A stretch of 64,000 bases of DNA from Camelus ferus (lineage: Eukaryota). Below, piece after piece: positions 50,056 to 53,174 of the stretch (the first letter of the stretch is position 1; every line of letters starts with the position of its first letter). The stretch is from contig NC_045716.1 of NCBI RefSeq assembly GCF_009834535.1, positions 21,018,001 through 21,082,000 of the forward strand, read 5' to 3'. Position numbers and translations under genes: made by a program. The notes below the pieces were generated by a model. It saw only the letters and a program-made list of their open reading frames with translations, searched no databases and was not told where the DNA came from.

Positions 50056-53000
50056 CTATTGGCTTGTGGGCCTTTGGGTACTAGAATGCCAGGGTTCTCC
50101 ATTCGGAGGGGACCTTGTTCTCCAAGTGGGAGATGGGCCCTGGGACCTGGACCTGGAATGGAGAGGGACACGTTCATCACAAGTCTCTGTACCAAGAATC
50201 ATGGTGGAAGAGAGACATCTTCATAAGAACAAGGAAGGGTGGGTGTCGGGATGTGTTGGTCACTGTATGTGGAGGGTGCAGGGCAGGTGCTTGGCAAACC
50301 TGGGCTGACTAGAGGCCAGACTTGGGGAATAATTCACCACTGTTACCGGAGCCTGGAAGAAAACATACTGAAAAGACTATCAGTGAGTTCAAGGCAACAA
50401 GTAGCAAGGAACTCTGTCCTCGGAGTTCCAAGCCTTTGCAGGAAGAGACTAGTAAACAGTAAACTAAAGTAAGAAGAGGGCCCAGTACCTGGAATGTAGT
50501 AGGCTTTCAACAGCTTTGGTGCTCCAAGATCCAAGGTGTGTTCTACAAGTTAGGAGAGCCTCGGATGTGGGGAGGAAGAGGCAATTTAGGGAAGGGTTTA
50601 GGGGAAATTGGCCAGGGCCTTGAGAAACAAGCAGAAAGGGGAGAGGGGCTGGTCCTGGGGTTCAGTGTCAGACCTGAGGCAGGGAAACAAGTAGGGGCGG
50701 TAAGGGAAACAGGAAGGCTGAGGAGAGTGCTGCTCCTGCCCTACTCACCTGTGCTGCACTTCTGTGCCCCTTCCCACCCTGGCTGGGGTACCTGCTACTG
50801 GGCGGGCCCTGCCTGGAGCCTGGGACCCGCTTCGAGCTGAGGTCTGGGAATGAAGGGGAAAAGGAAATCAGTCTGAGGAAAACAGCTATCCCAGCTGTGG
50901 ATGTGGCATGCGTGTATTGTCTCCTCCACACAATGGCCCCAGAAAGACAGAAGTACTAGAGGCAAACCTGGGTATGCCACGTGTCTGAAGGTGAAATTAC
51001 AGGGTGAGGCCCTCTGTTTTGTTGCAGTCTCTGTTAGCAACTTGTCTACCACCTCATCCTTCCCTGGGCCTCCAGGGGCAAAGTCACAGAAAATTGGTAG
51101 TCAACTGAATGGAACACAGGTCTTCTGACCCTCGATCCAGTCCTCTTGCCTGTACCAGGCAAATTTCATTTTGCCTGCAAATTGTAAATATGGTGTCCTA
51201 GCCTTTCAAATAAGAGGACATAAAACCTAGTTAAACGTAATAAATATTGAAGTATAATTTCAATTCCTGGGGTAGGCGGTTGCCTGAGAAATCTCCGTGT
51301 GAGGGAAGAAGGCAGTTGGAAAGACATGCAGCAGTTGAGAGAGCCTGGGTGGGAGGGGGAGCCAGAAAAAGAGGGGCACAGAGAGGAACTTCCTTGGGGC
51401 ACTGCTCCCATCTTGTGGCCCTTTTGGGAACTGCAGTCAAGGACTTGAAATTTTCCACTCCTCCCAAGTATGGTTCAGTATCCCCGGGGCAGATGACCAC
51501 ATATGAACAGCCAAGTGCAACATCCCTGAGGACATCAGCTCTGCTCATCACCATTGATGAGTGAATAAATGGTGGGGGAAAGGCAGGCATGTCAGCCAGA
51601 GAAGGGATAGCAGCTGGAGGGGATAGCAGGGAAGTGTTAGATTCTGGGATGGAGGGTCTCACCTGACACTGGGCCAGTGCTTCCTCATAGTACTTCAAGG
51701 CCTGGTCATGCTGCCCCAATCTGGCTGCAGCAGCCCTCAGACCTTCACAGGCCTGCCACTGCCCCTTCATGTCCCCTGGGGGAGAGAGCCTGAGAGGTCC
51801 TCCCATGGCTCTCTACCCTGACCGACCCTCCCCTTCAGAGGTCCTCCCCACAGCCTTTCCCCACCCTAAGCCACCTGCCAGCCCCCTCACCCTCACCAGT
51901 GTCCCGTACAGCCTGCAGAGCATGCAGGTAGTTGTCCCTGGCGGCCTTGTGGTCCCCCAGCTGGCTCAGTGCAAATGCCAGGCTGCCAAAGCTCTGGCCC
52001 TGCTCCCACCACTGCCCCACAGCACCTGGTGACAAGAGCACACACCCTCCTGAGAGGACCTCAGCTGCTGGGGCATCAGGACCCTACGCCCAACAATTAA
52101 TGGAGAGTTGCCAGGAGTCCTGGTGCTCAACCCCAGCACACCTCCAGATGCACCCACAGAGGCCTGAGCTCTCAAAACAGCCTCTTTGCCCTAGGTTTTG
52201 GCCTGAATGCCTCCCCCTTGGCTAGTTTGAGGCAGGCAAAAACGCAGGCAAGGCAGGTATTAATATCTCCGTTTTTTTTATACGTGTGGAAACAAGCTCA
52301 AAAGCAAAAGTGATTTGCTGAACATCAGTCACTACACACTGGGCTGCTCTTCAAGCTTCCTCTCCCAGCCAGGGCTTTTCCCTCTGCCCATTGCTGCCTT
52401 CCCAGGCCACAGCCTCTGGGCCCATCCCTCTGTCCTGTCTGGTTATCTCATCTGTTCCCCTAGTCCTCACCTTTCTGGTTCTGAAATTCTCAGCCCCATA
52501 ATCAGTCTTAAGTGTCCATCTACTCTTCAGCCTTGGGGCCCCAGCTGGAACCCCCTTTTAGTCCTTTGGTCCCAATCCCGTTCCCCAGACCCTGGTACCC
52601 ACCATGCAGGTCAGCAGCCTTCTGGTGAAACTCCTGGGCTTTCTGATAGTTGCCAAGGGCATTGTGGGCCATCCCAAGGTTTCTTAGCACCGTGGCCTCC
52701 TCTCCTGGCCCCCGGCACAGGGGCAGGGCCTGCAGGAAGGCCTCTGCTGCTAGCGGGAACAGCTGGAGCTGGGAGTAGCCCAGGCCTAGGTCATTATAGA
52801 GTCGCCCTAGAGGGCATGGCCAAGGTCACTGGTAGCCAGGTCAGAGGCAGCTGAAGCTGTACTAGTGCAGCCTCTTAGTGGCCCAGGGCCTTGTGGTACC
52901 AGGCCAAAGCTTGAGGCAGGTTGCCTAGGGCTTGGTAGGCCAAAGCCACATTGAAACGCTGGTCACCATGACACCTGCCCTGGGCCTTCTTTTGAGGTTG

Positions 53001-53174
53001 GGCCCGTAGGAGCAGCTCAAGGCCTCTGGCTGGGTCCCCGGTCTCCACGTAAGCAGCCTCCAGATTGAAGGCACAGGCTCGGAGAATGGGGTTGTCCCTG
53101 GTTTCTTTTTCTTCTCAGAACTTGAGGGTGAGGGCTCTTGGAGGGTATCCTCAGTGTTGAGGGAAGACATAGTG
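50056..53174 (-). pseudogene. TTC24: TTC24 (tetratricopeptide repeat protein 24) remnant, apparently inactivated
   Basis: ATG 53170 ([23 protein letters not shown]), frameshift at about 53102, second frame [34 protein letters not shown]...[14 protein letters not shown] (52877-52875) with no donor afterwards. Intact exons 52806-52603, 52025-51897, 51775-51663 (TPR-like), 50843-50749, 50152-50056. Syntenic position between IQGAP3 and NAXE. Identity rests on my recollection of the human protein. Confidence 0.88.

Follow-up and report, generated by a model that had tools for sequence, protein, structure and literature searches.

TTC24 is very likely a unitary pseudogene in Old World camels

The stretch of DNA analyzed here (the window) covers 64,000 nucleotides (nt) of Camelus ferus (NCBI RefSeq assembly GCF_009834535.1, contig NC_045716.1, positions 21,018,001 to 21,082,000) and carries on its minus strand the orthologue of TTC24, a gene for a tetratricopeptide repeat (TPR) protein, which is intron-containing and lies at its syntenic position. 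An earlier interpretation of the letters alone (the sequence-only reading) had taken this gene for a pseudogene broken by two deletions in its first coding exon. Both deletions were confirmed, as were the orthologue identity and the synteny, and the gene is disabled as described, but the damage is far wider than exon 1. TTC24 in Old World camels is thus very likely a unitary pseudogene, and we infer that no functional TTC24 protein is made in the camel.

The lesions of exon 1 were defined against reference exons located on the own DNA of alpaca (Vicugna pacos), harbour porpoise and red deer. The ancestral ATG (53170-53168) opens a frame of 81 residues, the longest available from this start, which ends at TAG 52927-52925 and is unrelated to TTC24 after codon 23. 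At this first junction 136 base pairs (bp) are missing relative to alpaca (139 bp relative to porpoise and deer), with AAA at both breakpoints; as 136 equals 45 x 3 + 1, the frame shifts. The TTC24-like frame (53102-52878) continues for 75 codons with TPR signatures and then meets TAA at 52877-52875. At the second junction (52877/52876), a further 383 bp are gone: exon 1 has lost its last 266 nt (approximately 89 codons) and its donor, and intron 1 has lost 117 of its 186 nt. Alpaca, porpoise and deer all have both exon-1 segments, and therefore the deletions arose on the camel branch; no counterpart of the deleted segments was found elsewhere within the window. An exact look-up of the 103-residue open reading frame (ORF) spanning the first junction returned no database entry.

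The sequence-only reading had given the same two frames with the same stops, and the same 68 nt without a donor (52874-52807) ahead of exon 2 (from 52806), and all of these coordinates were reproduced. Its estimates of roughly 45 codons missing at the first junction, and roughly 90 codons plus the donor at the second, come close to the 45 codons plus 1 nt and the 266 nt plus donor measured with real orthologues, and its suggestion of AAA microhomology agrees with the triplets at the two breakpoints of the first deletion. Its proposal that the second junction (CAC-TA/A) created the stop needs refinement: the breakpoint does lie inside the TAA, but a second camel lineage carries the TAA by a point change, and the stop may be older than the deletion.

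Beyond exon 1, exons 5 and 7 have been deleted (Table 1), and both deletions are derived in the camel relative to alpaca, porpoise and deer. The canonical coding exons of TTC24, as measured in deer, comprise 706, 204, 129, 113, 99, 98, 101, 102, 97 and 82 nt. A tblastn search with the alpaca protein recovered exons 1 (in two pieces), 2, 3, 4, 6, 9 and 10 from the window, and exons 5 and 7 were not found in it. When exon 6 is spliced to exon 8, a stop follows within nine codons, and when it is spliced to exon 9, the reading is out of frame; with exon 7 lost and both alternative splices failing, the conserved C-terminus is therefore unreachable in frame. The in-frame TAG of the exon 8 remnant carries little weight, this exon being variable in other mammals as well. 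Two candidate features were rejected. A stretch near window position 51060 had been likened by eye to exon 5 (KDEVVDKLL...), and was ruled out by the absence of exon 5 in both tblastn and a four-way alignment; an apparently symmetric pair of 271-bp insertions or deletions near exons 7 and 8 proved, with outgroups, to be two independent deletions, of exon 7 in the camel and of exon 8 in the alpaca. An exact look-up of a 48-residue ORF in exon 9 returned no database entry.

The sequence-only reading had proposed that both exon-1 junctions be checked beyond the assembly, and the sources consulted agree with it. The window has no run of N between 49 and 55 kilobases (kb), and 100% of the 31-mers sampled from 52400-53400, which includes both junctions, occur in 20 sequencing runs, from at least nine studies and under two organism labels. 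In addition, the Logan contigs L006, L008, L009 and L010, each from a different run, are 99.9-100% identical to the window and between them span all four deletions. The supposition that faulty assembly or rare alleles in the animal sequenced account for the deletions has next to no chance of being correct, given that all sampled words over both junctions occur in these 20 runs, that the four run assemblies show the four deletions over whatever parts of them they extend, and that the 136-bp junction recurs in a diverged camel lineage described below.

The alpaca provides the closest comparison. Its TTC24 (L002; GCA_048564905.1) is the orthologous gene in the corresponding position downstream of IQGAP3, and has an open 537-residue frame, a complete first exon and canonical splice sites throughout its nine exons. 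The protein sequence of exon 2 is identical to that of the camel, and exons 3, 4, 6, 9 and 10 are near-identical; the two genes differ in that the alpaca keeps the full 697-nt exon 1 together with exons 5 and 7, and has a 285-bp deletion of its own (L002:9788-9789; window 50542-50268), which removes exon 8 and leaves the frame open across exons 7-9. Because the alpaca gene is open, the loss is, on the sequences compared, specific to Camelus and not common to all camelids. The sequence-only reading had described a lineage-specific loss and suggested that camelids be examined for shared breakpoints, and the complete alpaca exon 1 now limits the loss to Camelus. As a separate observation, exon 8 of harbour porpoise measures 104 nt and is skipped by the porpoise gene model, and the exon looks dispensable or unstable in several mammals.

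A second Camelus lineage was recovered from public sequencing data as a contig (L007, run SRR36380800) with 0.64% divergence from the window over the aligned bases; its exon 4-5 stretch is replicated by L011, a contig of run SRR36380801. This divergence fits a sister Camelus species, and the second lineage is probably the dromedary. The 136-bp deletion with an identical junction, the TAA at codon 144 and the upstream arrangement are common to both lineages. In the second lineage, the TAA is a TAC-to-TAA substitution with the following bases retained, the 383-bp deletion is absent, and the exon-1 donor and intron 1 are kept. Private to this lineage are deletions of 22 bp and 107 bp in exon 1, a CGA to TGA change in an otherwise retained exon 5, and a 108-bp deletion ahead of exon 7, of which at least the first 54 nt are kept (up to the end of the contig). 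The TAA of the window may thus have been inherited, since this needs one coincidence fewer than its recreation by the 383-bp deletion. Intronic deletions were also observed on the camel branch, of 152 bp (51482-51483), 47 bp (51851-51852) and approximately 34-46 bp (51380-51382), of which the first two are common to the second lineage and the third is present there only in part (approximately 13 of 34 bp missing). Overall, the loss from TTC24 amounts to approximately 1.35 kb of approximately 4.8 kb on the camel branch, and approximately 0.47 kb on the alpaca branch.

The lesions, their polarity, their sharing and their presence in many samples are direct observations; the order of events is reconstructed from them, and the simplest history would be a single shared inactivation followed by independent decay. 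In the common ancestor of at least these two Camelus lineages, after the split from the llama and alpaca lineage, a 136-bp frameshift deletion would have occurred between the two AAA triplets, the TAC-to-TAA nonsense change at codon 144 probably arose in the same ancestor, and an inversion with deletion would have taken place just upstream of the gene. With selection lifted, each Camelus lineage would then have decayed separately, the lineage of the window losing the 3' third of exon 1 with its donor (383 bp), exon 5 (386 bp) and exon 7 (approximately 265 bp), and the other lineage gaining the 22- and 107-bp exon-1 deletions, the exon-5 TGA and the 108-bp deletion before exon 7. The loss would accordingly be bracketed between the split of camels from llama and alpaca and the split of the two Camelus lineages.

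The upstream rearrangement deserves separate mention. Next to the inverted block (Table 1), approximately 427 bp of adjoining alpaca sequence are missing from the window, and the contig of the second Camelus lineage (L007) has the same arrangement as the window across the block. This rearrangement may have removed the TTC24 promoter, and could be the first inactivating event.

Dating of the loss by the replacement-to-synonymous ratio was also tried, on 276 codons comparable in both camels, alpaca and outgroups. The synonymous:replacement counts were 4:4 on the Camelus stem, 1:4 on the two camel tips together and 2:4 in alpaca, which are too small to be trusted for dating. The camel replacements G83E, C117R, R306W and G357R affect residues identical in alpaca, porpoise and deer. 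The direction of the substitutions fits a loss late on the Camelus stem, with counts too small to carry weight.

The principal competing interpretation comes from public annotation. The search with the alpaca protein found an NCBI C. ferus model of 417 residues, named "tetratricopeptide repeat protein 24" and not flagged as low quality, whose DNA (GCA_009834535.1, CM020788.1) equals window 57489-46557 at 100% over 10,933 bases. If this model were correct, camel TTC24 would still be functional, with an alternative first exon giving rise to a shortened TPR protein. Several observations favor such a protein and weigh against a loss of function: NCBI annotates the protein at the camel locus; the retained exons all keep AG/GT splice sites and open frames (exons 2-4, 6, 9 and 10); the replacement/synonymous ratio is low, approximately 0.33 on the stem and approximately 0.37 on the whole camel branch, near that of alpaca, with counts too small to demonstrate relaxed selection; and sequence words of the locus occur in RNA-labelled runs, so that the TTC24 locus may be transcribed. 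A point of a different kind, against a unitary loss and taken up below, is that the DNA search for another TTC24 copy spanned the 64-kb window only.

Inspection of the model, however, showed a patchwork. It begins at a non-ancestral start exon (Table 1), enters the old exon 1 by an internal acceptor at 53110 and leaves it by a GC donor at 52883, stepping over the TAA with a 76-nt intron. Farther on, 111 nt of intron 4 are counted as coding, as far as the junction left by the exon-5 deletion, exon 6 is skipped and exon 8 is translated in a different frame; a second tiny intron of the model measures 79 nt. The locus is thus made to look protein-coding by an invented start exon, a GC donor, two introns of less than 80 nt and the reading of intron sequence, and approximately 283 of the 417 residues are homologous TTC24 sequence. 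Moreover, the two Camelus lineages bear different lesions in the same exons (a deletion of exon 5 in one and a nonsense change in the other, and different deletions in exon 1), and therefore no protein has been maintained. In the RNA-labelled runs, a fraction of 0.85-0.98 of the sequence words of the entire 3.5-kb gene (49800-53300) occurs, introns included, a pattern that points to unspliced RNA or DNA carry-over and not to mature mRNA. Among short database proteins, none was closer than 92% identity to the spliced camel exons 2-4, a result that is uninformative and does not count as negative evidence. We therefore regard the 417-residue model as artefactual, a product of similarity-guided gene prediction; it is still the main rival to pseudogenization, although a working shortened protein is very unlikely.

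The assignment of the locus to TTC24 is based on several lines of evidence. An exhaustive protein search with the 75-residue exon-1 piece matched TTC24 of tiger, puma and naked mole-rat with E-values of 1e-31 to 1e-36 (the name TTC24 is that given by the source records of the matched proteins), and tiger TTC24, as the query of a word-index search, brought up more than 100 TTC24 proteins of mammals, the 537-residue alpaca protein among them; an exact look-up of the pig protein gave no entry. The alpaca TTC24 locus and the window share 96-97% DNA identity. Exon 2 scored above the cut-off for Pfam TPR_12 (41.1 bits) and TPR_1 (37.7 bits), the TPR matches of the exon-1 piece being weaker, and a search of the ESM Atlas with the 75-residue piece found generic bacterial TPR clusters and nothing else. 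In both the alpaca and C. ferus loci, TTC24 is flanked by IQGAP3 upstream and by NAXE (YjeF_N) and GPATCH4 (G-patch) downstream, the same order as around human TTC24. The sequence-only reading had called all five neighbouring genes intact; in the C. ferus annotation, IQGAP3, NAXE and GPATCH4 encode 1635, 288 and 360 residues, respectively. As the best matches are named TTC24 orthologues, the DNA is 96-97% identical to that of alpaca and the gene lies between IQGAP3 and NAXE, the gene of the window is, by sequence and position, TTC24. Introns 2-4, 6, 8 and 9 are kept and colinear with those of alpaca, as in an unprocessed copy.

Some further observations concern the locus and its orthologues. 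The top match of the exhaustive protein search was a mammalian contig of 2653 bp (L001, Logan SRR28250211), approximately 80% identical to alpaca and with an intact TTC24 exon 1. The C. ferus annotation has no gene in the stretch of approximately 6.4 kb that separates TTC24 from the start of NAXE (window 43155-49557). In addition, the TTC24 orthologues inspected (window 49557-49580 and six proteins) all end in a CaaX-like motif (CMIM, CTIM, CIIM or CTIV) after a basic stretch, which suggests C-terminal prenylation.

A further alternative is that the camel locus is dead while an intact TTC24 copy survives elsewhere in the genome, in which case the pseudogene would not be unitary. Besides the 64-kb extent of the DNA search, the several TTC24-like models of one bat, which are flagged as low quality, indicate that duplication of this gene occurs in mammals. 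Nevertheless, the camel copy sits at the ancestral syntenic position, and among 5.8 billion proteins the tiger and alpaca TTC24 queries found a single Camelus model, built from this very locus; an intact paralogue in an annotated assembly would give a near-full-length model. A surviving second copy is thus highly improbable indeed, and we infer that there is no intact TTC24 elsewhere in the camel genome.

Table 1. Features of the TTC24 locus in window coordinates, in the order of transcription.
Feature	Position	Strand	Remarks
Substitute start exon of the NCBI model, 49 nt (MHSTQQAFSKSCPANA)	54441..54489	-	used by the C. ferus model
Rearranged block	53398..53634	-	approximately 236 bp inverted relative to alpaca, porpoise and deer (blastn orientation); starts 228 bp upstream of the ATG
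Exon 1 remnant a (ATG and 23 TTC24 codons)	53102..53170	-	matches alpaca at 22 of 23 residues
Junction of the 136-bp deletion, frameshift	53102..53107	-	53105/53104, ambiguous over the 3-nt AAA microhomology
Exon 1 remnant b (TPR codons, shifted frame)	52878..53101	-	93% identical to alpaca residues 68-143
Premature TAA, alpaca codon 144	52875..52877	-	left breakpoint of the 383-bp deletion (52877/52876) inside the TAA
Intron 1, 3' remnant, 68 nt	52807..52874	-	acceptor kept, donor deleted
Exon 2, 204 nt, open, AG/GT sites	52603..52806	-	same protein sequence as alpaca
Exon 3, 129 nt, open	51897..52025	-	three conserved residues replaced specifically in the camel
Exon 4, 113 nt, open	51663..51775	-	
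Deletion junction, exon 5 (99 nt, KEPDSVRERLVAKL...) wholly gone	51553..51554	-	386-388 bp
Exon 6, 95 nt, length as in alpaca, open	50749..50843	-	
Exon 7 (98-101 nt) and flanks deleted, approximately 265 bp	50664..50732	-	remaining sequence is downstream intron
Exon 8 remnant, 104 nt (102 nt in deer; +10/-8 nt)	50264..50367	-	in-frame TAG 50311-50309
Exon 9, 97 nt, open in the ancestral frame	50056..50152	-	
Exon 10, 82 nt, conserved C-terminus ...SGFCMIM and TGA stop	49557..49638	-	

The sequence-only reading had supposed that this loss may be undescribed, and the literature is in line with it. Full-text searches for TTC24, alone and with camel, found nothing linking the gene to gene loss or to camels, and TTC24 is unmentioned in the accessible portion of the supplements of a major survey of mammalian gene loss that included C. 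ferus and alpaca; NCBI, moreover, still annotates a protein. The gene is conserved from marsupials to primates, with full-length models in more than 100 mammals. In humans, B cells, CD8 T cells and plasmacytoid dendritic cells express TTC24 (PMC13464352), a gene with no established function. Camelus as a natural knockout, together with the open alpaca copy, offers a comparative handle on what TTC24 does. At the level of annotation, the results correct a stitched 417-residue model that public databases show as a normal protein. It is also conceivable that the loss was non-neutral and formed part of a coordinated remodelling of camel immunity, which we consider quite unlikely; if true, camels would be a natural knockout revealing the role of this TPR protein of lymphocytes and plasmacytoid dendritic cells.

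Lineage-specific gene losses are common in mammals, and camel TTC24 appears to be an ordinary unitary pseudogene that changes no general view. It shares with the mammalian unitary pseudogenes described as a class (PMC2864566; PMC5865188) the disabling in place of a single-copy conserved gene by frameshifts, stops and the loss of exons and splice sites, as well as the retention of ancestral introns and synteny. In the available portions of the main text and supplements of these two studies, camel TTC24 is not listed. Compared with unitary pseudogenes in general, the camel gene differs in that two sister lineages, having one lesion in common, decayed independently thereafter, and this two-lineage comparison provides a compact example of how a pseudogene decays separately in each descendant after a single common hit.

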